This document shows positions 8,483-62,102 of a stretch of 64,000 bases of DNA, one piece after another (within the stretch, counting starts at the first letter, position 1; each line of letters opens with the position of its first letter). The DNA comes from Macrostomum lignano. Its lineage: Eukaryota. Made by a program: the position numbers and the translations under genes. Location of the stretch: NCBI GenBank assembly GCA_002269645.1, contig NIVC01000712.1:452250-516249 (forward strand). The letters are read 5' to 3'. A model generated the notes under the pieces. It was not told where the DNA came from. It was given only the letters and a program-made list of their open reading frames with translations, and did not search any database.

Positions 8483-11400
8483 CTAAATGAGAGCTGGTAG
8501 GCTTTCAAGCTGTTTTATGTGCGTGCTGTAGCCAGAATGAACCAGAGGTTTTTGGGCGTCGGATTGGCAGGCCCCCTCAGGCCCTCCTCCCTTTTCAACG
8601 GGGCTTGGGACCGTCTTTGGCGAAGCTGCTGCTTCACGTTGAAGGCATTGCCGTCGACTCACAAAAATTAGCGTTAAAGTAGAGAGAAATAACAATAGAA
8701 TCAAACCAGCAGCCACAAATTGAACCATAATCAGCCTCATCCGTTCAGGACTGGGACTTGTTTGCTCTTCTTCCGCAGCCGGCTGGGCAGCCGCAAGCAT
8801 CCAGTTGAGCACAGGTTGGCTCGAGTCTCCGCATCTGTTTCTGGCCGCATCCGGGAAGCTGATCAGAGCCGGAAGCTGCTCACTGCAGTCCGTAAAGCTC
8901 ACCAGCCCGAGTACCTCACCATCAATGTTAAGATTGACAGCTCTGAGTGAACCACAGGAAACTGAGGAGTTCGTACTCTGGACGGTATGGTTTCTGGAAT
9001 TAAAGTGTAAAGAGTTGTGAAATTTGATTTAATTAGCCAGCCAATTGTTCCGACAGCAGATAAACTGTTATTCTCAAGTTAAGAAACTCACAGCTTATCA
9101 GCATCCTCGAACTCAGCCATTTTGCAGCCTTCTGCCCCGCAGTTCAGGTAGAAGACTTTCTTGGTCCTGTGCTCATAGAACAGTCCGATGCGAAGCCTCT
9201 GTGCAAGACTCAGCGGCTCCTTGCTGCGGGTGCTCAGGCCGGAGCCGACGCGAGTTCGCTGGCCTGAAGCCGGTGTTCAAGGGGAGTGAAATTGTGCAAA
9301 AGTTAAGGTGTGCGGTCTACAACCCAAGGTAAACAGCGATGTTCAGTAAAGGACACTGCATGCGTTCAATAAGCTGGCGCTGAAAACCATTTCTAAGTTA
9401 CTGCAGGCGAGGAATTTACATCTCTCGTGCGTACTGCTCCTATTGTGGGTTTTGCGGCGGTTTAACATAACGGCTTTGTCGGCCTGAAACTTGTGAATAT
9501 TATTCGATAATAATATGAAAACTATCGATGTAAAAGTAAGTGCAGGACAACTTTATGTTTCTGATTATGGCGCTATCTGGTATCATGGGTTATATTATTG
9601 ATGCTGTGTGAAGCATGCATATTGCAAAAATAATGTAACTTAGGCCATAGGAGCTTGGGGTATGAGATGCAACAGCAAATAAAACGAAGGTTTGTAACTT
9701 GAAAACTTTATTGAAATAAGAGCGTATTTGGAAATGCAGTTTTTAATTTGCATTAATTATTATTAATTAATTTGAAAATTCGCCAATTAATTCGGCTTAA
9801 ATTACCTACAGAGTGTGATTAAACCTTTTAATCACTGTCTTGTTTATGATTGGTAATCTGGTGAAAAATGTTTTTTTCAGTGGCGAAAAGGAGCATTTTT
9901 GAGCAATTGTTCAAATTTGATGCATACGCTCGTACACCGCAGCACAATTATCAAGGCAAAACTTCTGGCTACGCATGCATTCTTTCTTTACCTGCGCTGT
10001 TACGTTGTAATAAGCTTTAAATATTGATTTAGTACTGACATGGCGGGTACAAGACCTGAATTTACCAGTTTTCTTGACCCGAAATGTTACTGTACTCTAA
10101 AATTTGGTGATAGACTTCAAGTTGATTCAATGCAAGCTGCACGCCACAGACATTAACCGTAGGAATACCTCAGGGAATTTCTCAGTTAAAATTTCTCAGG
10201 GAAAGGCTCATTTGCACTCATTCTCAGGAGCCATTAAATTCAATAGCTGATGTGCAATGGAATATAGAATTTTACTTCATTTGATTGCAATTTAGATAAG
10301 CTTTTGTAGTGTAATTTAAGGTGCTATTTCTAAGATGGCTTTGTTTTTATCCCTAATCCATTCCTGACATGCATGTAGTATATTGAGGGAAGTTCACTAA
10401 CACAGCAGCACTCAGCCCTGTTTTAAGATATATAGTCTTCATGCACTAGTAATTCGTACATTATTGTTTCATTTCGCTAAGTGTTTGTAAAGCCACCGGC
10501 TCACTCCAGCTTACTCTCTTTGACGAAGTTCTGCAGAGCCGCGGAGCTGTTGAAGCTGGCGAGCCTCATGACTCCGCTGTCAGCGCTCATCGCAGCCAGC
10601 TCAGCAGTCAGGTTCCGACGAACCGATCCTGTGGTGTAGCAGTTGCTCTCAAAATTTGTAATGTTTCTGCAGCAGAATCCCGGCTCCATCAGCCGAATTT
10701 GTAGACCCGGGATATTCGCTGAGCTTCTCCGATTCAGCCGGAATGAGACCATCAGGTAGCTCCTACAGTTTTTATGTAGAGTGCAGTGGTTGAGTTCAAT
10801 TACAGAATTATAGATTTCAGAGAATTGGCCAGCTCTATCGTACCCTTTGGTCAGTTGCAGCACGCGCAGCATCTCCAGCTCCACTGGCTTTGGCTCGCTT
10901 GTTGAAGGCGACGAGCAAGTGGCTGGAAATGCATTGGGATTTTTATTAGCAGGGTGAGAATGAAAGCATTTGGCCGGTTTTATTAAGTACCAGCTAGCAT
11001 GGGTCAAAAACTACTGACTGCTTGTTTACGGTAATGGTTAGAACTGGAAATCGAAACCAATATCACCTGTATGACAGCAAGTTTAACGGTGCTCAAAGCA
11101 GCTTACAGTCCGAAGCCTTCGAGTGCAGTTCGTATCGCATCGGTTGCTGCTGTGCAGCTGAATCCAAAGATCTTGCCCACCTCCGCTGGCTTAAGTGCGC
11201 CTCCGTGTCAAAGCCAGTCAGAACCACAACGGCATTGTCAAGATGGTCAGTCAGAATCTTCCATTTGCAGTTGAGTCCTTCCTCAGGCACAGGGTCCGCG
11301 TCAGCTTTCGGAATGATTCGATCCTCAATGAACTCGAGTTTTTTGCTGAGCTGGAACTCATTGGTGATGCCACGCGGATAGCAGTACTCGTTGCCTGCAA

Positions 11401-13401
11401 GAGCTCTGTGGATAAGAAGAATGAGGAGGAGTAGATTTTTTGTAAATGGACAGTGAAAAGTTGTCGGAAGGCTCAGCTCACTTAAAATTTGGTCTCTTTA
11501 ACGTTATTTTCTGAGCTATTATTGGCAAAATGGGTTGTTGATTATGCGACTAATTGGCTTTTCGGCCGGTATTTCAGTTATTTCTCGCATACCAACCTGT
11601 TAAATAATATTTTATATTCTACGAGTAATAATATACAGAATGTATGATCACAACATACTATTATTATTAGCTACGCCCATGAACATGAAGAAATGTCATC
11701 GATTTTGTGACAACATTCTAGCTGAAATCAATACGATAAAATAGTTGTGTACTTACTATCCTACTGATAGTAAAAAGACAAAAAACTTGTGTGAAAAACA
11801 AGTGCTGTTTAACCCACCGAACTGTTCTGCGGTTTAACCAGCTACAGTTGTTCAATGGTATAATTCAATTAACTTTCGTACAATAATGTACGACATTAAC
11901 AGCGCCAGCCTCGCAAGGACAAGTCCCCAAATAACAGCCCCACCAAGGGGCAGTCCCCAAAAAAGACAGCACCAAAAAGGACAGTGCCCCAAGCAGTATG
12001 ACACCCCAATCAGTATGATGACCCAATCATTATGATGACCCAATCAGTATGATGACCCAATAAGTATGATGACCCAATCATTATGATGACCCAATCAGTA
12101 TGATGACCCAATCATTATGATGACCCAATCAGTATGATAACCCAATCAGTATGATGACCCAATCAGTATGATGACCCAATCAGTATGATGACCCAATCAG
12201 TATGATGACCCAATCAGTATGATGACCCAATCAGTATGATGACCCAATCAGTATGATGACCCAATCAGTATGATGACCCAATCAGTATGATGACCCAATC
12301 AGCATGATGACCCAATCAGTATGATGACCCAATCAGTATGATGACCCAATCAGTATGATGACCCAATCAGTATGATGACCCAATCAGTATGATGACCCAA
12401 TCAGTATGATGACCCAATCAGCATGATGACCCAATCAGCATGATGACCCAATCAGTATGATGACCCAATCAGTATGATGACCCAATCAGCATGATGACCC
12501 AATCAGTATGATGACCCAATCAGTATGATGACCCAATCAGTATGATGACCCAATCATTATGATGACCCAATCAGTATGATGACCCAATCAGTATGATGAC
12601 CCAATCAGTATGATGACCCAATCAGTATGATGACCCAATCAGTATGATGACCCAATCAGCATGATGACCCAATCAGCATGATGACCCAATCAGTATGATG
12701 ACCCAATCAGTATGATGACCCAATCAGCATGATGACCCAATCAGTATGATGACCCAATCAGCATGATGACCCAATCAGTATGATGACCCAATCAGTATGA
12801 TGACCCAATCAGTATGATGACCCAATCAGTATGATGACCCAATCAGTATGATGACCAAATCAGTGACGCCCAAATCAGTATGATGACCCAATCAGTATGA
12901 TGACCCAATCGGTATGATGACCCAATCAGTTACGCCCCAATCAGTGACGCCCCAATCAGTGACGCCCCAATCAGTGACGCCCCAATCAGTATGATGACCC
13001 AATCAGTATGATGACCCAATCAGTATGATGACCCAATCAGTATGATGACCCAATCAGTATGATGACCCAATCAGTGACACCCCAATCAGTATGATGACCC
13101 AATCAGTGACACCCCAATCAGTATGATGACCCAATCAGTGACACCCCAATCAGTATGATGACCCAATCAGTGACACCCCAATCAGTATGATGACCAAATC
13201 AGTGACGCCCCAATCAGTATGACGCACCCAAAGTGTGGCATCCAAAAGCATCTAATCACACCAATCAAAACCTGAAATCCGCTAGAAATCCCCGCTGGTG
13301 CAAGAAATTAAGCTTCGCATCACTCACATTTGAAGTGCAGAAGACAGCAGCAGAAGAGTCGCCAGGCTTCTGTCTATCACAATCTGCAAATTCAGCCGCA
13401 T
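8483..13401 (-). CDS. Receptor gene copy B, intact, 487 aa (signal peptide / CUB-like / CTLD-like / TM); exons 13401-13328, 11405-11107, 10922-10515, 9263-9092, 8993-8483
   Basis: All four introns are GT-AG with matching phases (2,1,1,2); 74+299+408+172+511=1464 nt in one open frame. Signal peptide ends ALA|GNE. CUB-like motifs LNCKWKIL..VVLTGFDTE and SYLMVSFR..PGLQIRL; CTLD-like motifs FCCRNITNFESNCY, RLASFNS, LRIGL, SCGSL, TDCSEQ; TM LIMVQFVAAGLILLLFLSTLTLIFV followed by SRR. The stop position assumes no further 3' splice. Confidence 0.88.
11996..13226. repeat. 17-bp minisatellite (GATGACCCAATCAGTAT)n, about 70 units, intron 1 of copy B
   Basis: Directly visible; same site as 1134-1345. 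Confidence 0.98.
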
Positions 13402-14914
13402 GTCGCTCACTTCCGGCACCTAAAATTCGCGATGAGAGGTGGGTGCAGCATGGATTTTCTGTGTCTGCGCCAGCATTTACACGTAAGACGTGAAACTGCT
13501 GAACAATGATATTCGTAAATTGCATCAAACTTCTTGTACGCGTACTATACGAAATTTCTAATTTAGCAATCTGATTTCTGTTTTAGTACCCGGACGTAGT
13601 GACACATTTCTTGGCTTTTAGCTCGTGCTCGTAGTTTACTCAACCCTGCTGTCAAGGAATTTTAGATGCAAAATCGTGTAGATTTAGTTTTTATTTGATT
13701 TTATATGTAATGAAGCATCTGGCGAGCCAGACTCAGCCTTTGCTCTGACTTACCTGAGCATACGAGCGTAATTGCATGTATATTTGAGTGGCTCTAATGA
13801 CCTCAATAGCTATAATACTATACATGTGTTGCAGATTTAGTCATCTTTTCAGATTGAATTTAAAAATAATTTAGCAGTAGAAGTACAATACACACACAAC
13901 CCCAAAGGACTCGCGAACGAGAATGTCTGTTAATCGAACGATGGTAGAAAATTCTGTGGTAACACAAAATATTTTGTTAACGATTCTAACTATTTTGCTT
14001 CCTATCTTTCCTTAAACAAATATCATTTGACAAAAGAGGACACTTTAACATGGCCATCAAATTATGCTCAAATTTCTTAAAAACTATGGTAACTAAATGT
14101 GCACGAAACTCAACTCACTGTCCATGTGGACTCACTCACCAAGAGATGTTGGCCAACTCCAGCTTCCTGCAGACTTTATGCAAGAAAATTTAAGAAGGGA
14201 GCACCACGGAAAACGCATGATTTTACAGGCGAAGCCGCGGTAACTCTGTGGCAGATCCAAGTAAAATCCAAGTAAAAACCCACGGCTTTTCCGCGGCGAA
14301 TGTTTCTCTTAAAGCAGTTGGAATTTGCCCCTCCTTTCAAGTACAACTAAAAGGCAATTCCATGGCTCTCCCATGGAAATTCAGTCAGTAGAATTGTTTA
14401 AATAGGGTTGGAGTGTGGGTGTATGCGTGCGCACAGTTGCCGCCCTATTGTACGAGTACGTAGCATGCCAGGAAAGAGAGACAGAAGAGATCTGTATCGT
14501 TCATGCGCTTTCAGACCAAGCATGCACTGTTCTCTGTACGCCGCCTAACGCTGTACGTTCGTACAAAAAAGAAAACTTCAATTTTTCTGTGAACTTAAGA
14601 GTTCTTTATTTATTGTTCAAAGCTCAAGGCCCAAAGGCAAAGCAGTTAACTGCAGGGAATGATTACAAGCATGTGACATACGTAGGGTCTGGTGGATGTC
14701 ACTGTCGTCAAAAGTTAAGAGACTAAAATTTTCTTTAGGGTTTCACAAGGGTCTTCAGAATGTGTTTATGAATTCTTCTTTTAGTTCAGTTCAACAACTG
14801 CGAGCAGTGCGAGCTTACGAGCTAAAAGTACTGAGGTGCAGAAACAGCATGAGTATTAGTTTCTTCGCTCTCATTTTTTTTCTGGTGGAAAACTTTAGCT
14901 AGAACTTTAGGGTA

Positions 14915-15455
14915 TGTTTCACATTCCCCAGAGTTCACATTCCCCAGATTTCACATTCCCCAGAGTTCACATTCCCCAGAGTTCACATTCCCCAGAGTTC
15001 ACATTCCCCAGATTTCACATTCCCCAGAGTTCACATTCCCCAGAGTTCACATTCCCCAGAGTTCACATTCCCCAGATTTTACATTCCCCAGAGTTCACAT
15101 TCCCCAGAGTTTACATTCCCCAGAGTTCACATTCACCAGAATTCCCATTTCCCAGATTTTGCATAACCAGTTTTCACATTCCCCAGATTTCAAATTCCGC
15201 AGATTTCAAATTTCCCAGATCAAATTCCGCAGATTTCACATTCCCCAGATTTCACATTCCGCAGATTTCAAATTCCGCAGATTTCACATTCCCCAGATTT
15301 CACATTCCCCCAGTGTTCACATTCACCAGAATTCCCATTCCCCAGATTTTGCATCAACAGATTTCACATTTCCCAGATTTAACATTCCTTGCATTTCACA
15401 CTCACCATATTTCACATTCCCAAGATTTTACGTTCCCAAAATTTTACATTCCCCA
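14915..15455. repeat. 16-bp TTCACATTCCCCAGA minisatellite (copy B flank)
   Basis: Duplicate of 3035-3575. Confidence 0.95.
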
Positions 15456-17450
15456 TATTTCTCCGGCGTCGCAATAAACAACAATACAGCAGCACAGGGC
15501 GCGCCTCTGGGTCAGGTCGCAAAGGAGGGCCACGTCGACGACTGAATCCAGGGCGCAGGCGTCAGACAGCAGGCAGGAGACAAGGCGCGAACCCGCGATA
15601 CGCGGCCTGCCTGCCTGCTTGTGCCAGCTGGACGCCACCCTCACCCATGTACGTAGGAAAAACCCAGAGCTATTTTTAGCAACACATCTATAGAGAGCCA
15701 TCTGCATGTGCAAGTACAAGGGATTCTCTGGCCTGTGCGGAACGCTCCTTGATTTTTAAACGTTATTAACAGGTTTTTTCCCTATTATCTTCTGCTTCCA
15801 TGGCAGAAAGACTTCAAACACACCGGCCTCTAAGGCCCTATTATGAGTGCGAGGCTCACAGCTCAGAATTCGCAGTAATGAACACTTCAAGGCAGTGTAT
15901 CTTATAATCAACTAAAACTAATCAACTAATGAATAGTTTGAGCGGGGTAGGGTTAGCGCTCACGCAGTTTCTCTCTGTGCTGTTTTTATGGCAATTATCA
16001 ACCCCCGCCTCTCAACACATTTTGCTGCGAGTCTTCTGTGTCACGCGTTCGCAGGCTGCTGGCTTGGCCCTCAAATCTCAGATTCGTTATTGTCATTTGG
16101 GCATTGAGATCGGCTTTCATAAGCTGGTCTGTTTGAATAGGTTTGATCAAGATGAGTAGAGGTTGTTGTTTTTTCCACTTCGATGCAAGCGCTTTTCCGG
16201 TGCTTACAGACAGGTATTAAAAGAATGAAAGAAACTGCAAATGATAACACGAACAAGTTTTGTAACTTAGATACTTACTGAATGTTATCTTACTTTTTAT
16301 TTTCTTTCTTTCTAATCTCTTTCCACTTTCTTACTAATCTCTTCTTTGATTAAAAAGATCAGGAGCGTGGCCACGGAAGGGCCAAAGGGCGATCCGACCC
16401 TCCAAATAGGCTGGCAAAGCTAATGGCTGAGTACCTACTGACTTGGCGCCTCTTCAGCAGGTTTGGCGCTTCTTTTCCCAATTCTAGCAGTTCCCCCGAC
16501 CACCACTTTGGCTACTTTGGCCCCAACAACAGCCCTTGGTGCTGGCGCCCCTTGGTGCTGACGCCCATTGGCCCAAAAGTACCGGGGTGATAACGGAATG
16601 CTTGAGATACCAGCTGAGGATGTCCAGCAGCTTGCCTACTGGATCTCGCTTGATCATCGAAACTAGATAAATTTGCAACAGCGTGTCTATAGTCACCTGG
16701 TGCCACCTGTGGAAGGTCCAGAAGCTCCGCCTGGGTGAAGCCTAGTGACCAACGAATGCAGAGCTGATGCAGACACATGTGGTCGACGTGCTGATGAAAT
16801 TTGGAGACTTGGCAAGGCTGCACTGAGGCGAAGTGCTGATTGGCGCTCAGGGGTGTACTGAATACACTGGCGCTTATGGAAAAAATCAGACCTTCTGGCA
16901 GAATCGTCGAATATCTCGACAGTCTGGAGGGCTTGTGTTAGCCCGTGTTGTTGAATTTCGTATGTCTGCGTTGCTCCAGTACGGCGCAGCAAAAAAATGT
17001 CAGGAGGATACCCCCCTCTGGGTAGTTATACTGTTAATTAAGTTCTCGGATTTTTTATCGTTACTTAATTATATTTTCTTCCTCGTTATTGTTTTATTTC
17101 CTCTTACAAATGTTTGATCCAGGGATTACATTTTCGATTGCCTTCTTTCTAGATTACGAGTAGTCTTGAAAGCAGCTCTCTGACTACCTTGATCATCGAT
17201 CACTTAATCAGAGTGCATAATTCTTGAATAACTGGATTCTTCAAGTGACATCTTAATCAATTTTGCCTGTTACTGGTAAAATTTAATTTGTAATTCCAAT
17301 ATACGCTTGCAAATTGATACACTTTTATTACAAAAGTTAATAAATGGTTAGGATACAATAATAGGTTAGTACGTAAATGTGGCTTCGTTCTGAAATTCTC
17401 AATGCGTTCGATTATCGGGCCACTACTTCGTATTAACTTAGTTACGAGCG

Positions 17451-17620
17451 CAGGGGCGTCGCCACCGGGGGGGGGCATGGGGGACATGTACCCCAGTAAA
17501 AGCTATGGGGGAGACATATAGCACCTGCGGCACCAAAATGAGTGCTAACAACACTAATTCACAATAATGTACATGTAGAAATTTAGTCATGTACTCGTAA
17601 AATCTATGGCGGCGCCCCTG
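17451..17620. mobile_element. 170-bp hAT-like MITE (duplicate of 5569-5736)
   Basis: TIR CAGGGGCGTCGCCA / TGGCGGCGCCCCTG (13/14 match); TSD TACGAGCG at 17443-17450 and 17621-17628. Confidence 0.87.
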
Positions 17621-18281
17621 TACGAGCGTACATATTAAACAGTGTACGATTATTCCACACTTACTTCACTCTACTGCAAATATAAGGAGGCGTGGATGGA
17701 CAATAAACGTGACATGACAGGTCCGGTGATGAAATTTGTACATGGGCTAAGTGTACATTGGGGAGCTACTGAGGAACAATGGGCATATTTTGCAAATGTA
17801 TCTGGGTAGAAGTATTCTGGACAGAAGCTCGTGCAGCCTCCATGACTTCTGCCATTGCTCGGATTAAGAAAGAAGTAAATCCATATACTAAAAATGAATT
17901 AATTATAAAAAATATAAATATTTCCGATATTTGCAGAGATTTACAGCATTTAAACAGCAGAACAGTAACAGCATAATTATACAGTCATCACTCGCATGTA
18001 ACAGCATATTTCTCATTCAATCCTCTTATAGTTTCAATGAAGAGCTTTGAGGCTGTGAACTATTATTCTTACGATTAGTAAAGCTTAGTTAACACCAACA
18101 ACTAAAACACAAAATCTTCAAACCTGACATCTACTCGATGAAGCCGATGAGGAAGTGAAGCTGGATTTCGAGTAATCAGACTCCATAATTATGGATAGTT
18201 TGGTCTCTTTTGCAAGCGCGGTTATTGGCTGATCAAATACGAGCTAGAGTTGACTGGCGAACCAAAATCAGACTCATTCTT

Positions 18282-18480
18282 TTAGGACTGCGACTTGCTT
18301 GTTCTTAGCTCGTATTCTGCAGTTGGCTGGGCAGCCACAAGCATCCAGCTGAGCACAGGTTGGCTCGAGTTTTCTCTCTTAATTATCATCTCTTGTTGGC
18401 TCTTATCATCAATGATAAGATTGACAGTTCTGAGTGAGTCACAGAAGACTGAGGAGTTTGTACTCAAAGCGGTATGGTTT
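18282..18480 (-). pseudogene. Orphan exon 5 variant lacking the TM segment (66 codons to stop)
   Basis: CATAG|A AAC CAT.. gives NHTALSTNSSVFCDSLRTVNL..SSQPVLSWMLVAAQPTAEYELRTSKSQS*; no exons 1-4 adjacent. Confidence 0.75.
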
Positions 18481-18501
18481 CTATGGTACGTTTGGTACTT
18501 T

Positions 18502-19904: not shown

Positions 19905-20010
19905 GTTTCAAATTACCCCATATTTCATATTTTCCAGATTTCACATCCCTGAATTTTACATTTCTTACATTTTACATTCCCCAAATATTACGTTCCCAAA
20001 TTCTACATTT
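19905..20010. repeat. Short degenerate 16-bp minisatellite block
   Basis: TTTCACAT/TTTTACATT/CCCAGAT motifs in the homologous position. Confidence 0.65.
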
Positions 20011-34505: not shown

Positions 34506-34546
34506 CAAGGACCACTAGAAGTTACCGTAACTTCTAGTGGTCCTTG
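34506..34546. mobile_element. 41-bp perfect palindromic insertion (TIR-only element)
   Basis: CAAGGACCACTAGAAGTTAC-C-GTAACTTCTAGTGGTCCTTG flanked by 8-bp TSD GGCATGCA (34498-34505, 34547-34554); paralogous sites (~2640, ~19470) carry a single GCATGCAC. Confidence 0.85.
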
Positions 34547-37997: not shown

Positions 37998-38021
37998 CTA
38001 ACCCTAACCCTAACCCTAACC
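37998..38021. repeat. Interstitial telomeric repeat (CTAACC)n; also ~39374-39401, 40809-40826, 42092-42103, 43260-43287, 44458-44481, 46928-46957
   Basis: 2-5 TAACCC units at the same position in each array unit. Confidence 0.9.
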
Positions 38022-50064: not shown

Positions 50065-53000
50065 TCATTCAGCTGTGACGTCTAAGGCGCAGCCCCCGTT
50101 ACGAACCAGAGGTTTTTCAGAGTCGGATTGGCAGACCACCTCAGGCCCTCCTCCTCTTTTGAACGGGCTTGCGCCCGGATTTGGCGAAATTGCGGCTATA
50201 TATTGAAGGCTGTGCAGTCGTCTCATTAGCGTTAAAGTAGAGAGAACTGCCAATAGAATTGCACCAGAAACCACAAGTAGAACCAAAATCAGCCTCATCC
50301 TTTTAGGATTGGGACTTGTTTGTTCTTCTTCCGCAGCCGGATGGGCAGCCGCAAGCATCCAGCTGAGCACAGGTTGGCTCGAGTTTCCGCATCTGTTTCC
50401 GGCCGCATCCGGGAAGCTGATCAGAGCCGAAAGCTGCTCACTGCAATCCGTGAAGCTCACCAGCCCGAGTACCTCACCATCAATGGTAAGATTGACAGCT
50501 CTGAGTGAACCACAGGAGACTGAGGAGTTCGTACTCTGGACGGTATGGTTTCTGGAATCCAAATGTCAAGAGTTGTGAAATTTGATTTAATAAGCCAGCC
50601 TATTGTTCTGACAGCAGATAAACTGCTATTCTCAAGTTCAAGAAACTCACAGCTTATCAGCATCCTCGAACTCAGCTATTTTGCAGTCTTCTGCCCCGCA
50701 GTTCAGGTAGAAGACCTTCTTGGTCCTGTGCTCATAGAACAGTCCGATGCGAAGCCTCTGTGCGAGATTTAGCGGCTCCTTGCTGCGGGTGCTCAGGCCG
50801 GAGCCGACGCGAGTTCGCTGGCCTGAAGCCGGTGTTCAAGTGGAGTGAAATTGTGCAAGAGTTAAGCTGTGCTGCCTACAGCTAAAACTGATGTGCATTT
50901 ATTGCTTAACAATGATATTGTTCATGTTAGTCCTCACTACTGCGAGTAAGATTAGCTCATGAGAGTAGCCATGCGATATTTTATGGCAGATCCTGCCTCT
51001 ACTGTGTTTAATTTTCACTAGTCTAAAAAGCCACCGGTTCACTCCAGCTTACTCTCTGTAACGAAGTTCTTCAGAGTCGTGGAGCTGTTGAAGCTGGCGA
51101 GCCTCATGACTCCGCTGTCAGCCCTCATCGCAGCCGCCAGCTCAGCAGTCAGGTTCCGACGAACCGATCCTTTGGTGTAGCAGTTGCTCTCAAAATTAGT
51201 CATGCTTCTGCCGCAGAATCCCGGCTCCATCAGCCGAATATGTAGACCCGGAATATTCACTGAGCTTCTCCGATTCAGCCGGAATGAGACAGTCAGGAAG
51301 CTCCTACAGTTTGATGTAATGTATTGTGATTGAATTTTAAGTAAGAAATTGATTTAATAAAATTGTGTCCAGCATCGGGCCAGCTCTATCGTACCCTTTC
51401 GTCAGTTGCAGCACGCGAAGCATCTCCAGCTCCACGGGCTTTGGCTCGCTTGTTGAAGGCGACGAGCAAGTCGCTGGAAATGCATTGGGGTTCGCATTGC
51501 CAGGGTAAGAATCGAAGTGTTTGACTGGTTTTATCGAGTTCCAGCTGGCAGTTAGCAGCGTGGGTAAAAACCCACTGACTGCTTGTTCACAGATGCCATT
51601 CGACAACTGCTTACTTTAATAATAATAATATAATAATTGATTACACCTGCCCAATGGGCAGATGTGCAACCGACAGCTCAGCCGCAGCTATTGCGCGGCG
51701 CGTCTGAAGGCTGCGTACGGCTGTTCAGTCCAAAGACTGCGGGTTCGACACACACCCTCACTTATCCCAGCTAATGCTGGCACCCATTTTACAGCTGGGT
51801 GAACTGAAGCAATGCAGAGTAAAGTGTCTTGCTCAAGGACACAAATTGTTCCAGTGGGATCGGGAATCGAAACTGCGACCTTCACGTTGTGCGTCCGACG
51901 CTCTAACCACTAGGCTACAACCTCTAGACCATTACAACTGCCTTGAGTCAGCTATACTAGGCATTTATGCAAAGGCGTGAAGTTTGATTTCATAATCACT
52001 ATTATTATCAACTCTCTTTTCGTTGGCGACCAGACGGCTAAAATTGATGCTCTAAAGGCCTGCTGTCTTCTTCAACAATTAACATTATTGCACAGCTTAT
52101 AGAATATTCTCTAATTGTGATCAAAGCGCTGCTTACCGTCCGAAGCCTTCGAGTGCAGTTCGTATCGCATCGGTTGTTGCTGTGCAGCTGAATCCACAGA
52201 TTTTGTCCGCCTCCACTCGTTTACGCGAGCCTCCGTGTCAAAGCCAGTCAGAACCACAACGGAATTGTCAAGGTGGTCAGTCAGAATCTTCCATTTGCAG
52301 TTGAGCCCTTCCTCAGGCACAGGGTCCGCGTCAGCTTTGGGAATGATTCGATCTTCAATGAACTCGAGTTTTTTGCTGAGCTGGAACTCATTGGTGTTGC
52401 CACGCGGATAGCAGTACTGGTTGCCTGCCAGAGCTCTAAAGAAAAAAGGGCGGGAAAGTAGATTTATTGTAAATGGACACTCAAAAGTTACTGGAAGGCC
52501 CACTTAAGATTTGGTCTACTAAAAACGTTATTTTCTGAGCTATTATTGGCAAAATGTGTTGTTGATTATATGATTAATTGACTTTTCGGTCGGTACTTCA
52601 GTTATTTCTCCCATACCGACCTGTAAAAAGAAAACGTTTTATATTTTAATAATGTATAGAATGTATAGTAATATATTATTATCATTAGCTATGCTCTATA
52701 CGCATGTACGTGTAGAAATGCCATCGATTTTGGGGCAACATTCTAGCGGAATTCAATACGATAAAATGGGTGAGTATCTACTTACCATCCTACTGATAAG
52801 TAGAAAGACAAGAAAATATCGCGTGTAGAACAAGTTCTGTTTATCCAGCTACAGCACTATGATATAATCCAATTAACTTTCGTACATTAATGTACATTGA
52901 CAGCGCAAGCCTCGCAAGGACAGGTCCCCAAAGAACAATCCCACAGCGGGCAGCCCCACAAAGGACAGCCCCAATTAGTATGGCGCCCCCAGAGTAGCAT

Positions 53001-53161
53001 CCCAAAACATTCTGCCTACCTTTAAGCAAATGTTAATCCGCAAAAAAATCCCAGTTGGTTTAATGAATGAAGCGTCGCATCACTCACATTTGAAATGTGG
53101 CAGACAGCAGCAGAAGAGTCGCCAGGCTTCTGCCCATCACTATCTGCAGATTCAGTCGCAT
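50065..53161 (-). pseudogene. Receptor gene copy D, probable pseudogene; exons 53161-53088, 52435-52137, 51473-51053, 50822-50651, 50551-50065
   Basis: Splice sites are intact, but exon 3 is 421 nt with a frameshift and an in-frame TAA (~51337) in a diverged patch; intron 3 is only 230 bp. Confidence 0.82.
51615..51923 (-). mobile_element. tRNA-derived SINE in intron 2 of copy D (duplicate of 25961-26270)
   Basis: Same A/B boxes, core and tail at the same intronic site. Confidence 0.85.
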
Positions 53162-54739
53162 GTCGGACGCTTCCGGCACCTAAAAATCCCGATGTGAGGT
53201 GGACGCTGCATGCAGGAGATTCTGTGTCCGCTCAGCATTTATAGGTAAAGACGTGAAACTGCCGAACAAGCTGGATATTCGTAGATGCCATCAAAACTTC
53301 TTGTACACGTACGAGCGTACTTCTAATCACTTCTAATCGCTTAGCAATCCGATTTCTGTTTTAGTACCCGGATGTAGTGACAGTTAACTTGGCTTTTTGT
53401 TAACCCAACCCTGAGACCAAGGAATTTCACATGCAATAAGCGTCTTGATTTGACTTTTTATTTGATTTTAAATATAATATTGCATCTGGTGAGACAGGCT
53501 CAGTCTTTGCTCTGACTTACATGAGCAAAATTACATTCTAGTGACTCTAATGAACCCCTGTAGCTATGATACTACATGCAAAGAAAGTAATCAGGTACGT
53601 TGAATTCAAAAATAATTTTGCAACAGAAGTACAATACACACAGCCCCTAAGGACTCGAGAACGGGAATGCCTGTTAATCGAACGATGGTAGAAAATTCTG
53701 CGGTAACAAAAAATATTTTGTTTAACATTCTTAACCATTTTTGCTTCCTTCTATCTGATCTTTCCTTATACAAATCTCATTTGACAAAAAAGGACTCTTA
53801 ACATTGCCATCAAATTATGCTCAAATTTCTTAAAAATTATGGCAACTAAGTGTGCACGAAACTAAACTCACTGTCCATGTGGACTCACACTCACCAAGAG
53901 ATGTTGGCCAACTCCAACTTCTTGCAGACTTTATAAGAGAAAATTTAGGAGGGGAGCACCGTGGAAAACCCATGATTTTATAGGCCAAGCCGCGGTAACT
54001 CTCAGGAAGATCCAAGTGAAACCCACGGCTTATCCGCGGTGAATTTTCTCTAAAGCAGTTGGAGTTTGCCCTCCTTTCAAGTACAACTAAAAGGCAATTC
54101 CATGGCTCTCCCATGGAAATTCAGTCAGTAGAATTGTTAAATAGGGTTGAATTATAGGAGTGCAGGTGTACGAGCTATGCGTGCGCACAGTTTACGCCTT
54201 ATCACACTATTGTACGTAGCATGCCAGGAAAGAGAAGCAGAGGACGCACGCTCGATCTGTATCGTGCATGCGCTTTCAGACCAAGCGTGCACTGTTCATT
54301 GTACGCCGCATAGTCAGTGCTGTACAAAAAAGGACTTCAGTTTACCGAGAACTTGGAGTTCTTTATTTTTTGTTCTTTCTAAAGGTAGTGAAGTAAAAAA
54401 TTGCATGCATACAGATCCCACAAATAGTTCGTAAACAATAATAGCCTGCCGTTCAGCTCAAAGCAGTCAACTGCAGGGAATAAAATAAAAATTACAAGCA
54501 AGTGACATTGGGTCTGGCGGATGTCCTTATTGTCGAAGTTAAAGACTAAAATTTTCTTTATGGGTTCTATCGGGGTTCACAAGGTTTTTCAAAATGTATT
54601 TATGATTTCTTCTTTTAGTTTATTTCAACAACGAGCAGTGCGAGCTAAAAGTACTGTGGTGCAGAAACAGCTTGAGTATTAGTTTCATAGCTCTCATTTA
54701 GTCTTTTTTGGTGGAAAACTTTAGCTAGAACTTTAGGAT

Positions 54740-55135
54740 ATGTTCCACATTATCTCGATTCTGCATTCCCCAGATTTTAGCTCGTACATTCCCCCAGATT
54801 TTACGTTCCCGCAGCTTTCACATTCCTAAGATTTGCATCTCCCAGATTTCACATTCCTTAAATTTTACATTCCTCCAATTCTACATTTCTTAGATTTCAC
54901 TTTCTCCAACTTTTACATTCCACGAATTTTGCACCCCCAGCTTTCACATTTCGCAGATTTTGCTTTTCTCCATGTTTCACATTCCCAGATTTTGCATTCC
55001 TCCATATTTTACATTCCTAAGATTTCAAATTCCTAAGATTTCAAATTCCTATGATTTCAAATTCCTAAGATTTCAAATTCCTAAGATTTTACATTCCAAG
55101 ATCTTACATTCCCCAAATTATACATTCCCAGATTT
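54740..55135. repeat. Degenerate 16-bp minisatellite block (copy D flank)
   Basis: Duplicate of 29090-29485. Confidence 0.85.
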
Positions 55136-55851
55136 CCCGGCGTCGCAAGGAAACAACAAGATACGCTGTCAGAGTCCTTTGACGGTAGCAGCACAAGTCG
55201 CAAAGAAAAGCCACGTCGCCGATTGAATCCGGGGCGCCGGCGTCAGACAGCAGGCTGGAGACAAGGCGCGAACCCGCGATACGTGCATGGGACAGCTTGA
55301 TTTTGCCAGCCGCTCTCACCCCATGTACGCAAGGCGAACCCCAGAGCTATTTTTAGCAACACATCTGTATAGTGCCATTTGAATGTGAAAGTGCAAGAGG
55401 ATTCTCTGGTCTGTGTTGAACGCTCTTTAATTTTTAAACGTTTGCGTTATTAACAAGTTTTTTCTGTTATCTTCTGCTTGCATGGCAGAAAGACTTTCAA
55501 ACACTCTGGCCTGTAAAGGCTCTATTATGAGTGAGGCCCAAATCTCAGAATTCGCAGCACAGAATATTCAAAGCAGGGTATTTGATAGTCAACAGGAACG
55601 CATAGGCACAATGCAAAAATGCATAGTTTGAGTGTAGCGTTACAGCTCAACGAAGTTTCTCTCTGTGCCCTGCCCTCAACGCATTTTGTTGGGAGTCTTC
55701 TGTGTCACGCGTTCGCAGGCTGCTGGCTGCTGCAGCCTCTAATCTCGGAAACAGTTATTAAAAAAATAAACAATGCTGAAAATGAAACGGAATGAAATGA
55801 AATTTCATTGCCATGTGCATGCTATATGCGCTAGTAAATTTATTACATTTT

Positions 55852-57827
55852 TGATGGGTTTCGACCTTTGGGCTCCTTGTTAGGGAAGCCTTCGGGCCTC
55901 AGGCTCAGAAATAAATCAATTAGAGCCCTGGCCCCCCACTCCTGTCAGATGGTCAGCCCCATGGTAGCTTGATCGTGTGGCGAGCAGTCTTGGTCCTATA
56001 GCTAAGAGAGGGACAGCGAGAGACAAGCAGGGAGAATTTTGAAGGTAGAAATTAGTTAATCCGCAGATTAGCTAACTCGCTGCCACCAGCCCGTACGTCC
56101 TGGCTCACCACACCGGGACTCTCGAAATCGGGCTTCCGACTAGAAGGGGCTTTGCACTTACCTTGCAACTAGTGTCTTTTTGCTGTCAATCTCGAAGTCA
56201 TAGCCGATGATAAGGGACACTGCTGGGACTAGATCGCATTGGCCATGCAGGTACAGAGGGGACTTGTGCAGGGGATTCTTGCAGTGGCGAGTCTATGGGG
56301 TAGCTACATGTACTATTACATTGCTAAATACGAAGATATGTACTTTTGGCCTTCAACGCGCCAACTAGCCTATCATAGCGCTGATGATAGGCTAACTCGA
56401 ACTTCAGAGACCTCGCATGATTCATTTACCCGAGCCGCTTGGCTACCCTAGAGTGCACAAAGTACATCTCTGGCGCCGATTCTGCACTTCTGGCAGTTTT
56501 GCTCACTGATTTGATAGATTGGTCGACTGAGAACCGCCTTGCCATTGGTCCACTGTGACCGGCGCCTACTAGCTTAGCTACTCATCTGAGCCATCGGCGA
56601 ACAAAGAAATAAAGCCGATAAAAATAACTGTTAGATTTAACCTTCTCCTTAGATCACTTCACACCTCAGATTGAATTGGAGTTTTAGACTACTAGCAGTA
56701 TTATTGAATGATTTCTGCCTCAGCAACAGCACTTATTGAACAAAATGAGCAAAAGTGTGCGCCTAATTCAGCTACTGAAAAAGGGGACAGATAAGGGATC
56801 ACCCAATCAAGCAAGTCTAGGTAGCCTCTCACCCAACCAATCAGAAACTCAACAGCCGGAGACCAGGTAATCCACAGTGACCGAATCGGCTTGATGCTCT
56901 GCAGCTGTAGACTCGGGATGATGCTGTCACAATCTTCGCTGTTAGCTAGCAGGTGATGCTCTTCACTTGATGTTCGCTGCTGATGACCGGGGGACTCGTC
57001 CTTGATGATGATGGGGGGGAAGTCGCAATCCGGGGATCAAGAAACGACGGTCAGGCTCCGGGAGGTCTCAAGCTAGGCCAAGGTCCCAGGAGGTTGAGGT
57101 CCGAGCGGGCCAAAAACACCGGTTTAAATAGCCGCCAACTGGACCGCAGTTTGTTATAATGGAACACGTTGATTCTGATTGGCTGAGCCGTTTTGTTAAA
57201 ATGAGCGCCGAATTTTCTGATTGGCTAAGCTTGTTGCTACCCATAATCACGTGACCGAGAGATCCTATCAGTTCCCACAGGGTCGTAAAAAGATGACAGA
57301 TGCGGCCATAAATCAATCAAAATCGCAACAAAATGATTTATGACTTTTCGCGTAGGATTGACAGAAATTGATGAAAAAATATACATTAGCAAGCTCTTAT
57401 TAAATAGAAAGTGAAGATAATGAAGAGAAATTGCTAATCGCTAATCCCAAGGTACTTTTAGGGTAAAACGCATAGCTGTCAAAGCTGTCACACGCTTGAG
57501 TGAACACGAACAATAGGCTCTGACCTCATAAATCTTGATGGCCTGTCAAAATGATGAGAAAAAAGCTACCGCCCGCATCCTCTCAGACCATCTGGCACCC
57601 GCCTTAACACTGAGTGAGGCGCAGGTGGCTGTCAGACCAGCTTCGAAAGCGATGATTTATGACCCAAAAAGCTGCGCCTATGTTATTATGACTACTAGTA
57701 TGACCAAACATTATATCTAGTATAGATTCTATGACAATTAACAAAAAAGGATAAAATGCCCACTGCCCACTGTTAGTAGGCTGGTAAAGTTAGAGCCCAT
57801 GTGCTAGCGCGGGATTTGGATTCATCA
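55852..57827. mobile_element. 1976-bp insertion, probable solo LTR
   Basis: Termini TGATG...CATCA, 4-bp TSD TTTT; empty site ATTACATTTTCATTAC at ~7855-7870 in the paralogous region; no long ORF and no internal direct repeat seen. Confidence 0.65.
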
Positions 57828-58478
57828 TTTTCATGACAAAACGTAAATTTCGCAAAAGGGTTACAGTTAAAATGGTTAGATTAGTAGGTACAATAATTTT
57901 GTTAAAATAATTTTGCAGGCTTTGAATTTACCTACTAATACTATTAATACCCAAAATTGTCCATGCGCTCGTTTTTTCACCACTGTTTAATTCAGCAACA
58001 AACCAAGCAGTCAATCCTTATTGCACACATCTTTCGCGTTAGTGCAGTGAAAACATCAGATGTGTGGAGGATAGGTAAAGTAGTAAATGAATTATAAACA
58101 AATGAAATATTTATAATATTTACAGCGATTACCGCATTTATAAAGCAGAAAAATTGTTGCATATTAGTGACAGCATAAGTGTACAGTGATCACTCGCATA
58201 TAACAGCTAGCGAACTTCTCACTCAATCCTCGTAGTTCATTCTTAGTAAAGCTGCTAACACTTAGTTAACACCAGCAACAAAATCATAAAATATTGTCTG
58301 TTGAATCTTCAAACCAGTCATTTACCGGATGCATCCGATGAGGAAGTGAAACTGGATTTCGAGCAAACAGACTCCATAACTATTAATGATTTTGTCTCTT
58401 TTGCAAGCGCGGATATTGGCTGATCAAAGCGAGATGATTGGCGTGACTAAATGAGAGCTGGTAGGCTTTCAAGCTGTT

Positions 58479-61400
58479 TTATGTGCGTGCTGTAGCCAGA
58501 ATGAACCAGAGGTTTTTGGGCGTCGGATTGGCAGGCCCCCTCAGGCCCTCCTCCTTTTCAACGGGGCCTGGGACCGTCTTTGGCGAAGCTGCTGCTTCAC
58601 GTTGAAGGCATTGCAGTCGACTCACAAAAATTAGCGTTAAAGTAGAGAGAAATAACAATAGAATCAAACCAGCAGCCACAAGTTGAACGACAATCAGCCT
58701 CATCCGTTCAGGACTGGGACTTGTTTGCTCTTCTTCCGCAGCCGGCTGGGCAGCCGCAAGCATCCAGTTGAGCACAGGTTGGATCGAGTCTCCGCATCTG
58801 TTTCTGGCCGCATCCGGGAAGCTGATCAGAGCCGGAAGCTGCTCACTGCAGTCCGTAAAGCTCACCAGCCCGAGTACCTCACCATCAATGGTAAGATTGA
58901 CAGCTCTGAGTGAACCACAGGAAACTGAGGAGTTCGTACTCTGGACGGTATGGTTTCTGGAATTAAAGTGTAAATAGTTGTGAAATTTGATTTAATTAGC
59001 CAGCCAATTGTTCCGACAGCAGATAAACTGCTATTCTCAAGTTAAGAAACTCACAGCTTATCAGCATCCTCGAACTCAGCTATTTTGCAGTCTTCTGCCC
59101 CGCAGTTCAGGTAGAAGACCTTCTTGGTCCTGTGCTCATAGAACAGTCCGATGCGAAGCCTCTGTGCAAGACTCAGCGGCTCCTTGCTGCGGGTGCTCAG
59201 GCCGGAGCCGACGCGAGTTCGCTGGCCTGAAGCCGGTGTTCAAGTGGAGTGAAATTGTGCAAAAGTTAAGGTGTGCGGTCTACAACCCAAGGTAAACAGC
59301 GATGTTCAGTAAAGGACACTGCATGCGTTCAATAAGCTGGCAATGAAAACCATTTCTAAGTTACTGCAGGCGAGGAATTTACATCTCTCGTGCGTACTGC
59401 TCCTATTGTGGGTTTTGCGGCGGTTTAACATAACGGCTTTGTCGGCCTGAAACTTGTGAATATTATTCGATAATAATATGAAAACTATCGATATAAAAGT
59501 AAGTGCAGGACAACTTTATGTTTCTGATTATAGCGCTATCTGGTATCATGGGCCATATTATTGATGCTGTGTGAAGCATGCATATTGCAAAAATTATGTA
59601 GCTTAGGCCATAGGAGCTTGGGGTATGAGATGCAACAGCAAATAAAACGAAGCAGGTTTGTAACTTGAAAACTTTATTGAAATACGAGCGAATTTGGAAA
59701 TGCAGTTTTTAATTTGCATTAATTATTATTAATTAATTTGAAAATTCGCCAATTAATTCGGCTTAAATTACCTACAGAGTGTGATTAAACCTTTTAATCA
59801 TTGTCTTGATTATGATTGGCAATCTGGTGAAAAATGTTTTTTTTCAGTGGCGAAAATGAGCATTTTTGAGCAATTGTTCAAATTTGATGCATACGCTCGT
59901 ACACCGCAGCACAATTATCAAGGCAAAACTTCTGGCAACGCATGCATTCTTTCTTTACCTGCGCTGTTACGTTGTAATAAGCTTTAAATATTGATTTGGT
60001 ACTGACATGGCGGGTACAAGACCTGAATTTACCAGTTTTCTTGACCCGAAATGTTACTGTACTCTAAAATTTGGTGATAGACTTCAAGTTGATTCAATGC
60101 AAGCTGCACGCCACAGACATTAACCGTAGGAATACCTCAGGGAATTTCTCAGTTAAAATTTCTCAGGGAAAGGCTCATTTGCACTCATTCTCAGGAGCCA
60201 TTAAATTCAATGCTAATGTGCAATGGAATATAGAATTTTACTTCATTTGATTGCAATTTAATAAGCTTTTGTAGTGTAATTTAAGGTGCTATTTCTAAGA
60301 TGGCTTTGTTTTTATCCCTAATCCATTCCTGACATGCATGTAGTATATTGAGGGAAGTTCACTAACACAGCAGCACTCAGCCCTGTTTTAAGATATATAG
60401 TCTTCATGTACTAGTAATTCGTACATTATTGTTTCATTTCGCTAAGTGTTTTAAAGCCACCGGTTCACTCCAGCTTACTCTCTTGACGAAGTTCTGCAGA
60501 GCCGCGGAGCTGTTGAAGCTGGCGAGCCTCATGACTCCGCTGTCAGCGCTCATCGCAGCGAGCTCAGCAGTCAGGGACCGACGAACCGATCCAGTGGTGT
60601 AGCAGCTGCTCTCAAAATTAGTCACATTTCTGCCGCAGAATCCCGGCTCCATCAGCCGAATTCTCAGAGTCGGGATATTCGCTGAGCTTTTCCGATTCAG
60701 CCGGAATGAGACCGTCAGGTAGCTCCTACAGTTTTTATGTAGAGTGCAGTGGTTGAGTTCAATTACAGAATTATAGATCTCAGAGAATTGGCCAGCTCTA
60801 TCGTACCCTTTGGTCAGTTGCAGCACGCGCAGCATCTCCAGTTCCACTGGCTTTGGCTCGCTTGTTGAAGGCGACGAGCAAGTGGCTGGAAATGCATTGG
60901 GATTTTTATTAGCAGGGTGAGAATGAAAGCATTTGCTGTTTTTATTAAGTACCAGCTAGCATGGGTCAAAAACTACTGACTGCTTGTTTACGGTAATGGT
61001 TAGAACTGGAAATCGAAACCAATACTACATGTACGAGTATAATAGCAAGTTTAACTGTGCTCAAAGTTCTGCTTACAGTCCGAAGCCTTCGAGTGCAGTT
61101 CGTATCGCATCGGTTGCTGTGCAGCTGAATCTACAGATCTTGCCCACCTCCGCTTGCTTTGGTGAGGCGCCGTGTCAAAGCCAGTCAGAACCACAACGGC
61201 TTTGTCAAGGTGGTCAGTCAGAATCTTCCATTTGCAGTTGAGCCCTTCCTCAGGCACAGGGTCCGCGTCAGTTTTAGGGATGATTCGATCCTCAATGAAC
61301 TCGAGTTTTTTGCTGAGCTGGAACTCATTGATGTTGCCACGCGGATAGCAGTACCGGTTGCCAGCGAGAACTCTGGGAGAAGAATAGAAAAGTAGCTTTG

Positions 61401-62102
61401 CTGTTGTAAAATAGATATTGTAGTTTAAAACTACGGAAGGGTCACTCCCCTTTGTTAAAAAATCGGACTTGTTAGGATATTGTGGGAGAATTGTTTCAAT
61501 GAGGTAATTTATTGGTTCGTCGGTTCAGTTATTAATCGCACACTGACCAGAAACCAATAAATATCTGTACTCTACGCATTGGAGTAAGGACGCGCGATCG
61601 ATTTAGCGATAAAATTAATATTTTTACCAATTTCAAAACGATAAAGAGATGAGTTCTTACTGTCCTACTGATAGTAGAAACACAAGAAATGGCGTGCAAA
61701 AAGACTTGCTGTTTTGCAGCTACAGTATTAAGATATAGGCCTAATCAAATTAAAATTCATACACTGCAAGCACCATTCTCGTTAAGGACAGCCCTCCAAA
61801 GAACTGTGCAGCAAGGACAGCCTCACAAAGGACAGCCTCCAAACGAACGAACGACTGCGCTCCAACAGTATGACACCCCACCAATCAGTATTATGCCCCA
61901 AGCATGGCGCCCCCATGCAGTGTGACATCCAAAAGCATTCAACCCACCCTAAGCAAAAAACCTGATTCCGCTCAGAAATCCCAGTTGTGGCTAATTTGGT
62001 GCAAGAAATTAAGCTGCGCATCACTCACAGTTGCAGTGCAGCAGACAGCAGCAGAAGAGTCGCCAGGCTTCTGCCAATCGCTATCTGCAGATTCAGTCGC
62101 AT
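58479..62102 (-). CDS. Receptor gene copy E (two 1-bp deletions; pseudogene or sequencing error); exons 62102-62029, 61372-61077, 60885-60479, 59226-59055, 58956-58479
   Basis: Splice sites conserved. Exon 3 is 407 nt versus 408 in B (TT versus TTT at ~60482), and one base is missing in the tail (~58553). Exons 3-5 and intron 3 are very close to copy B. Confidence 0.75.

Follow-up and report, generated by a model that had tools for sequence, protein, structure and literature searches.

The last 64 kb of contig NIVC01000712.1 of the flatworm Macrostomum lignano (assembly GCA_002269645.1, Mlig_3_7) carry a tandem array of paralogous genes for membrane proteins with a predicted CUB fold and a predicted C-type lectin-like (CTLD) fold. 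This stretch is referred to as the window; its position 64000 is the contig end, and positions in the database record are obtained by adding 452249 to the window position. Identity of the window to this contig is 100%, likewise that of window 63161-38804 to the locus of the annotated protein P0002. Five gene copies (A to E) and two relics are arranged in one orientation on the minus strand within 62 kb (Table 1), and the peptide motifs that had been quoted in an initial annotation of the DNA were each found at their expected positions on this strand. The genes B, C and D are complete, each with its own first exon and upstream region. Further arrays of the family are present on other contigs. 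The present contribution deals with the mosaic structure of these copies, in which different segments of one and the same gene have different closest relatives among the paralogs.

Annotated proteins, multi-copy DNA alignments and the GT/AG sites agree in six coding exons per gene. The third exon of the five-exon model proposed initially consists of two exons (3a and 3b) that are separated by a mini-intron (GTACGA...CTGTAG) whose length is 81 nt in three copies (A, B, E), 91 nt in D and 93 nt in C, and 81 to 93 nt among 13 copies of the family. In 8 of these 13 copies, translation through the mini-intron would lose the frame or run into a stop, and every annotated protein skips it. One of the patches that had been listed as variable protein sequence of exon 3, AGQFSEIY/AGLMLDQFFEIH, lies inside this GT..AG intron. 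Copy B has an intact open reading frame (ORF) of 460 amino acids, with AG and GT bordering the exons at all splice sites, and the ORF of C is likewise intact (455 amino acids). D is intact with 453 amino acids by read-through and 454 in the annotated model P0002 (PAA78040.1), to which it is identical until the final small exon; the model has an extra 3' exon at ~48807-48830. Exon 3b of copy E lacks one A in its final part (CAAAGAG), and the tail contains a second 1-nt deletion. If canonically spliced, E would be frameshifted, and it is either a pseudogene or affected by homopolymer assembly errors. An alternative acceptor at the junction of exons 3b and 4 of E, which would keep the frame, was ruled out by the canonical acceptor in the other copies and in the annotated proteins. 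Defects were also seen in copies outside the window. ATA replaces the start codon of G8a (locus L008, 817-3828), which in addition has a 6-nt deletion in exon 3a; in G9 (locus L005, 16880-20338), the frame is interrupted by a stop where exon 3b begins; and exon 2 of D' (L008, 9737-10034) has a 1-nt deletion that is absent from the near-identical intact version P0039 on a 29.7-kb contig. G8a and G9 are thus pseudogenes, and D' is a possible one.

Copy D is C-like in its 5' part and E- or B-like in its 3' part. The identity of D to C amounts to 99.8% in the upstream DNA, 100% in exon 1, 99.7% in intron 1 and 97.3% in exon 2, and most 100-bp bins from the upstream DNA to intron 2 are identical. 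It then falls off to 83% in the mini-intron, 92.7% in exon 3b, 94.2% in exon 4 and 82% in exon 5. Exon 4 of D is 98.3% identical to that of E (compared to 94.2% for C), the identity to E and B is ~93-97% in intron 4 and at the start of exon 5, and a run of ~60 consecutive E-type informative sites extends from exon 4 through intron 4 into the beginning of exon 5. D is E/B-like at ~50880-50400 and C-like 5' of ~51288. In a maximum chi-square test of the trio D versus C and E, C-like states made up 258 of the 266 informative sites that lie 5' of D position 51288, compared to 91 of the 218 sites that lie 3' of it (permutation p<=0.001). The initial annotation had described D as a copy that shares exons 1-2 and upstream DNA with C and has an exon 4 and a start of exon 5 of the B/E type, and both statements agree with these values. 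The same type of mosaic recurs in D' on contig NIVC01002507.1 (98.3% identity over 8.9 kb), and P0039 on a third contig is also of the D' type.

A second switch of identity was found between B and E. Between intron 3 and a point 0.6 kb beyond the stop, these copies share 98-99% of their positions (E is B-like at this level from ~60500 downward); they are 95% identical in intron 2, 93% in exons 2 and 3b, and 77-88% (about 85%) identical or unalignable upstream. A maximum chi-square trio test placed the breakpoint at B position 11190, where E-like states account for 47 of the 168 sites 5' of it and for 459 of the 495 sites 3' of it (p<=0.001). The proposal that B shares exons 3-5 and intron 3 with E is therefore correct from intron 3 onward, but not for exon 3b, which is 93.1% identical to E compared to 97% to the copies G5 and G6. 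It had also been suggested that B is a chimera that combines exon 2 of A with exons 3-5 of E. This candidate was rejected, as A is truncated by the window edge: in the 1,518 bp beyond the window start (locus L002), A is 98.5% identical to B through exons 3a, 3b and intron 3, and 95.7% identical to E. A', the copy of A on NIVC01002507.1 (P0037), is B-type over its whole length and 99.8% identical to A over 4.3 kb. Because of this continuation and of the B-type sequence of A', A and B are near-identical tandem duplicates with a period of ~11.9 kb and not separate donors. Intron 1 of both copies contains a 17-bp minisatellite (CCCAATCAGTATGATGA) with 13 repeats in A (1126-1348) and 74 repeats in B (11988-13231), a large gap in copy number between units that are 97-100% identical; related arrays are present in G6 (L005).

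For a wider comparison, 13 copies were extracted from four contigs and identity matrices were calculated for each exon. The nearest neighbours change from exon to exon. The nearest relative of A in exon 1 is G5 (98.6%), with B at only 89.2%, but exon 2 does not differ between A and B (100%). For exon 3b, G5 and G6 come nearest to A and B (97%) and G3 to C (97.2%), compared to 92.7% between C and D. B, E and G3 are mutually 98.3% identical in exon 4, and the closest pairs in exon 5 are B and E (98.5%), C and G5 (96.5%) and G6 and G7 (95.1%). A pairwise homoplasy index (PHI) test on codons 1-370 of 11 copies from four contigs yielded 0.346 versus 0.452 +/- 0.012 for permuted sites (p<=0.001), and 44% of the informative site pairs of these copies were incompatible. 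When the modules of 16 proteins were tabulated, exon-2 patch types, CTLD loop types and three transmembrane/tail types were found to re-assort. A comparison exon by exon, which had been proposed together with the initial annotation, thus revealed discordant rather than congruent segments in the nearest neighbours as well as in the maximum chi-square and PHI tests; such statistically supported discordance is characteristic of families with unequal crossover and gene conversion. A further protein, P0042 from a contig of 139,552 bp, has in its 5' half patch motifs of the G5 type (exon 2 and start of the CTLD) and in its 3' half motifs of the G7 type (exons 4-5 and transmembrane patch). By its sequence, it would be either a natural chimera or a chimera of annotation or assembly.

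Superimposed on the long segments are short patches of differences in otherwise near-identical duplicates. Exon 1 of A and B differs at 8 of 74 nt between flanks that are 99-100% identical, and at 7 of the 8 sites both states occur in other paralogs. C and D, which are 100% identical in most intron bins, differ 7 times near the beginning of exon 2 (first 100 nt), and both alleles of 6 of the 8 differing sites of this exon are present elsewhere in the family. Exon 3b of B and E has 17 differences in 248 nt versus 20 in the 1,251 nt of intron 3, with both alleles known from other paralogs at 10 of the 17 sites. Depending on the comparison, this was the case for 8 of 20 up to 7 of 8 sites. Since both alleles are found in other paralogs, we regard the micro-patches as a signature of conversion rather than of new mutation.

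The window is cut off by the end of its contig. Positions 62936-64000 overlap with L008 16070-17140 (NIVC01002507.1, positions 1-1071) in a dovetail of 1,071 bp with 99.25% identity. NIVC01002507.1 is a 66-kb contig that carries D', G8a, G9, G6, A' and G7. Because of this dovetail the array probably continues on NIVC01002507.1, and the assembler broke at this point. The order of the genes on their own strand would then most likely be G7, A', G6, G9, G8a, D' / E, D, C, B, A. If NIVC01002507.1 is the continuation, the array comprises at least 10 genes, and additional copies are present on five other contigs.

The whole case for mosaicism comes from one assembly of a neopolyploid genome, in which non-repetitive blocks with an identity of at least 95% to some other block add up to 180 Mb (PMC5730564). 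PacBio reads were assembled by Canu 1.4 at an errorRate of 0.04, polishing was done by Pilon with Illumina and RNA-seq reads, and the annotation consists of genome-guided StringTie/TACO transcripts (PMC5730564). Several points weigh against the explanation that is preferred below. Contig chimeras between copies that are 96-99.8% identical could mimic part of the pattern, and so could RNA-seq-driven 'corrections' in exons; polishing by RNA-seq reads could in particular create exon-biased pseudo-patches. The 1-nt homopolymer frameshifts in E and D' may be sequencing errors, two annotated gene models of the window are cross-paralog chimeras (see below), and neither the CUB nor the CTLD fold of the proteins is recognised by Pfam. 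It is conceivable, accordingly, that the assembler joined highly similar paralogs or homeologs and that multi-mapping Pilon reads produced the exon patches. The redundancy and RNA-seq polishing of the assembly, the position of the window at a contig end with just a short dovetail to the other contig, and the higher divergence of exons compared to adjacent introns in recent duplicates would all fit such an artefact. On the other hand, the mosaic types recur on independent contigs (D, D' and P0039; A, A' and B), and the recombination signal is present in 11 copies from four contigs. The divergent patches are not strictly exonic, as evident from the mini-intron of D versus C and from intron 2 of B versus E, and D-type patches are common to D and D'. 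Moreover, the shifts in identity are graded over several blocks and do not consist of a lone switch between two 100% matches. An artefact is unlikely in our view, and we infer that the exchanges are biological.

The explanation that we prefer, with a probability of roughly 0.7, is a lineage-specific tandem array of receptor genes that evolves in the germline by birth and death, with segmental duplication, non-allelic recombination and gene conversion. Segmental duplications in the kilobase range and non-allelic homologous recombination would end inside genes (between exon 2 and intron 3, and in exon 5), by which the 5' and 3' halves of one copy would gain different closest relatives. Gene-conversion tracts of tens to a few hundred base pairs would subsequently put variants of other paralogs into near-identical duplicates. 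The term "exon-block shuffling", used initially, is not apt for this process because the breakpoints are the ends of kilobase-scale duplications that include introns and intergenic DNA. Similarly, the suggestion that unequal crossover or gene conversion generates variants of the ectodomain in a combinatorial way has to be divided: exchange between paralogs is in agreement with the maximum chi-square and PHI tests, the discordant exons and the micro-patches, but a combinatorial system is not what these data describe.

A combination of segments that is programmed or takes place at the transcript level could proceed by somatic recombination, by conversion from cassette-like relics or by read-through splicing between copies. 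Two gene models look like products of the latter. P0001 (PAA78039.1, window 8483-27507) joins exons 1-3b of C to exons 4-5 of B across a 16-kb 'intron', and P0036 (PAA78038.1, from 13401 to beyond the window start) joins exons 1-3b of B to a downstream exon 4 of the AEAG type, which is possibly exon 4 of A; if so, A differs from B there. Both models thus connect neighbouring copies at the junction of exons 3b and 4, and the two promoterless exon-5 relics (at 6326-6917 and 18309-18479) could be taken as donor cassettes. However, B and C do not differ over the first 52 nt of exon 4, so that short RNA-seq reads cannot separate the B and C junctions, and StringTie/TACO models commonly fuse tandem paralogs. 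P0001 and P0036 are therefore probable artefacts of short-read genome-guided annotation. Programmed diversification, as in cassette conversion, DGR, VLR-like or somatic FREP-like systems, would be recognised by a dedicated enzyme and by silent donor cassettes adjacent to an acceptor that is expressed. The ORFs of the 64-kb window include no reverse transcriptase, deaminase or recombinase, the one enzyme-like ORF being a transposase of the P-element type, and the exon-5 relics are degenerate. We consider a programmed mechanism highly improbable.

The encoded proteins are type I membrane proteins that consist of a signal peptide, a predicted CUB fold, a predicted CTLD fold, a conserved cysteine-containing stalk, one transmembrane helix and a short tail. 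A word-index search of 5.8 billion sequences with a protein built from the E locus revealed homologs from M. lignano only. A profile hidden Markov model search of 1.84 billion representative proteins resulted in 22 matches, and all that were looked up belonged to M. lignano, down to 22% identity. By these searches, the family is specific to its lineage, M. lignano being the one species in which it can be detected. An AlphaFold2 prediction with 9 close paralogs reached a predicted local distance difference test (pLDDT) score of 32, and a usable model was obtained only after distant M. lignano paralogs had been added (19-sequence alignment, pLDDT 71.5, predicted TM-score 0.64). The C-terminal part of this model (about residues 176-340, block pLDDT mostly 77-91) matched the CTLDs of NKR-P1, LOX-1, CD69, NKG2D, CLEC5A, Mincle and DC-SIGNR in a Foldseek search of the PDB (probability 1.0, target-normalised TM-score 0.6-0.73), and it has the predicted alpha/beta double-loop fold of a CTLD. 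A search of the PDB sequences with the family profile yielded 20 matches, all of them CTLDs, the best one with E=0.0045 and only the N-terminal half aligned; a PDB search with a single sequence gave no match. Pfam scans with the read-through-style protein, the correct proteins and remote homologs found nothing relevant, and neither Lectin_C nor CUB was matched even at E<=10. In the alignments, C181 and C192 are the N-terminal cysteine pair of the CTLD, C304 and C327 flank the beta-hairpin, and the WIGL position reads RIGLF; the helix-1 cysteine is missing in this subfamily and present in the distant paralog P0012. Neither EPN nor QPD occurs in the long-loop segment (NCGAEGCKMAEFEDADKL), and the WND position is FTD or FRG. 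Because of the lack of EPN/QPD and WND, the proteins should not be filed as sugar-binding lectins but as proteins with a CTLD fold only. The N-terminal part matched the CUB domain of neuropilin (6gh8, probability 1.0, target-normalised TM-score 0.52) and those of Gpr126, PCPE-1 and Neto2. C33 and C71 are conserved in this half (pLDDT 50-85), in which residues 95-110 are disordered. The UniRef label 'CUB domain-containing' for the family is an automatic one. In the literature on M. lignano C-type lectins, CUB proteins or gene conversion, no description of the family was found, and six locus tags of the family occurred in no paper. We assume that the proteins act as surface recognition receptors.

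Differences between the copies had been expected to cluster in patches, and this was confirmed. The 14-residue window of highest diversity in the ectodomain comprises codons 92-105 (TEAHLSQRRWARSL; permutation p=0.0002), exactly the patch noticed in exon 2, and the lesser peaks (codons 313-326, 290-303, 182-195 and 271-284) correspond to the other coding patches. Summed pairwise Nei-Gojobori ratios of non-synonymous to synonymous substitutions (dN/dS) were 1.52 for codons 91-108 and 0.38 for the rest of the ectodomain, 0.45-0.7 for the CTLD hotspots and 0.36 for the stalk, which is conserved as it had been described. The ectodomain patches are not the most variable part of the protein: the highest entropy of all was found in the transmembrane segment and tail (dN/dS 1.43), which the initial annotation had not noted. 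The tails of C, G3 and G5 (e.g. C exon 5, ~23290-23360) contain the sequence L-Q-Y-R-[AT]-V, which by eye fits the consensus [SIVL]xYxx[IVL] of an immunoreceptor tyrosine-based inhibition motif, possibly by chance. The tyrosine is replaced by R in B and E, and position +3 is A in D, G4, G6 and G7.

In the model, the exon-2 patch falls on residues 95-110, a loop of low confidence that connects CUB strands, and the patch retains R-x-x-[RK]-S even in paralogs of 33-36% identity (RRWARS, RRWKRS, WRRTKS, RRVARS, QRLGRS). This sequence may represent a furin-type cleavage site in a flexible loop. The hotspot would then be an exposed, possibly protease-cleavable loop under relaxed or diversifying selection. 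An adaptive diversification of the receptors, in which ligand surfaces are under positive selection and gene conversion supplies the variants, as in receptor families of immunity or mating, would account for the high dN/dS of this patch, the significant clustering of substitutions and the young duplicates with exons more diverged than introns. It would also account for the hotspots at 271-284, 290-303 and 313-326, which lie in the C-terminal half of the CTLD, the half via which NK-type CTLDs bind their ligands. However, the value above 1 in the exon-2 patch is not significant because it is based on 18 codons and non-independent pairwise counts and because recombination violates the model. Relaxed constraint is equally possible for the patch and fits its location in a low-pLDDT loop. 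The CTLD hotspots stay below 1, the high ratio in the transmembrane segment and tail has the look of replaced modules or of relaxed constraint, and at least two copies (G8a and G9) are pseudogenes. Adaptive diversification is thus a possible but rather doubtful explanation. Single-tree codon models are invalid here because recombination has been demonstrated; analyses of selection must be recombination-aware and await read-level validation of this neopolyploid, RNA-seq-polished assembly.

Table 1 Features of the CUB-CTLD gene array in the window (positions in the window; copies listed from window start to end).
Feature	Position	Strand	Description
Copy A	<1-1521	minus	exon 1 1448-1521, exon 2 242-540, start of exon 3a 1-76; cut by window start
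Copy B	8483-13401	minus	exon 1 13328-13401, exon 2 11107-11405, exon 3a 10844-10922, exon 3b 10515-10762, exon 4 9092-9263, exon 5 8483-8993
Copy C	23247-27507	minus	exon 1 27434-27507, exon 2 26483-26781, exon 3a 25742-25820, exon 3b 25401-25648, exon 4 23838-24012, exon 5 23247-23739
Copy D	~50065-53161	minus	exon 1 53088-53161, exon 2 52137-52435, exon 3a 51395-51473, exon 3b 51053-51303, exon 4 50651-50822, exon 5 50551-~50065
Copy E	~58447-62102	minus	exon 1 62029-62102, exon 2 61077-61372, exon 3a 60807-60885, exon 3b 60479-60725, exon 4 59055-59226, exon 5 58956-~58447
Mini-intron of B	10763-10843	minus	holds the stretch read as AGQFSEIY
Exon-2 hypervariable patch (codons 92-105)	B 11165-11206; A 300-341; C 26541-26582; D 52195-52236; E 61132-61173	minus	
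Exon-5-only relic	6326-6917	minus	stalk motif 6855-6899; between A and B
Degenerate exon-5 relic	18309-18479	minus	upstream of the B unit; counterpart present in other clusters of the family
Duplicated block	1-6004 vs 10866-17892		97-98% overall, many 200-bp bins 100%; A/B repeat unit, period ~11.9 kb (self-BLAST)
Duplicated block	7859-11418 vs 57826-61384		96.4%; 3' two-thirds of B/E + 0.6 kb 3' flank (self-BLAST)
Duplicated block	25385-29729 vs 51036-55379		97.6%, 99.7-100% upstream of exon 2; 5' half of C/D + 2.2 kb upstream DNA (self-BLAST)
P-element/THAP9-type transposase	30614-32944	minus	776-aa open ORF
14-bp array	18502-19099		perfect, 42.7 copies, 100% matches
16-bp array	20998-21748		47 copies, 97%
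16-bp TTTCACATTCCCCAGA array	3037-3580; 14917-15461		repeated upstream of A and B
Diverged TTTCACATTCCCCAGA arrays	29143-29487; 34998-35342; 54785-55135		

Apart from the receptor genes, the window contains a transposase of the P-element/THAP9 type ~3 kb upstream of exon 1 of copy C. Pfam assigned THAP, Tnp_P_element helix-turn-helix, N- and C-terminal TNP-like RNase H and GTP-binding insertion domains to it (E 1e-16 to 1e-37), and the locus may represent an intact DNA transposon. A common insertion of ~0.5 kb, absent from A, B and E, is present in intron 2 of C (~25900-26460) and D (~51560-52110). It includes a tRNA-like stretch (GGTTGTAGCCTAGTGGTTAGAGCG...GGTTTCGATTCC) and may be a tRNA-derived short interspersed nuclear element; ARAGORN found no tRNA in the whole window, and Rfam returned nothing for window 25800-26500. 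The intergenic region between D and C, 3' of D on the gene strand, is occupied at ~36500-48300 by 12 kb of tandem repeats that are nested in one another, with periods between 30 and 150 bp and with units of higher order (e.g. 43451-44365 vs 45912-46807, 93%). This block shows a strong strand asymmetry with a GC skew of up to +0.53, and it is absent at the matching site after D' (L008). The short arrays of the window are listed in Table 1.

If the mosaics are real, the locus represents a clean invertebrate case of receptor paralogs that are diversified by non-allelic recombination and short conversion tracts. A family labelled 'hypothetical protein' gains a predicted fold (CUB and CTLD) and an architecture in a model organism for regeneration and sexual selection, and users of the GenBank models should be aware that those of the cluster include cross-paralog chimeras. 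M. lignano is a sexually antagonistic hermaphrodite. It is tempting, though speculative and in our estimation unlikely, to regard the family as a large taxon-restricted repertoire of type I CUB-CTLD receptors for the recognition of microbes, partners or sperm, in which ligand-facing loops and transmembrane/tail modules are re-assorted by gene conversion under diversifying selection. The family would then be the flatworm equivalent of recognition repertoires of the NK-receptor or clec type. Cross-paralog splicing as in P0001 and P0036 could add combinations at the transcript level.

Clustered paralogs that consist of re-assorting blocks are also known from the Sp185/333 (SpTrf) genes of sea urchins and the fibrinogen-related proteins (FREPs) of snails, and recombination or conversion has been proposed as the source of their diversity. 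For both systems, diversification at the expression level or in somatic cells and an immune function are documented; the flatworm family, in contrast, is known here as mosaicism of germline paralogs within one assembly. The clec family of Caenorhabditis elegans consists of CTLD proteins, many of which also have a CUB domain (PMC8051790), and members are thought to act in the recognition of microbes and are often genomically clustered. The pairing of CTLD and CUB, predicted for the flatworm proteins, and the lineage-specific expansion into a large family are common to the nematode and flatworm families, and stalk, transmembrane helix and tail are found on the flatworm side. Homology to the nematode family was not detected, as the profile search returned M. 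lignano proteins only. In the clusters of the mammalian natural killer (NK) complex (Ly49/KLRA, NKR-P1/Clr, NKG2), the receptors are type II proteins without CUB, whereas those of the flatworm are type I and have a predicted CUB fold at the N-terminus, and a sequence relationship between the two is not detectable (no match to Pfam Lectin_C). The mammalian CTLD paralogs are mosaics that arose from unequal crossover and gene conversion. Both the NK complex and the array of M. lignano thus present themselves as tandem receptors of the CTLD fold with mosaic paralogs and interspersed pseudogenes.

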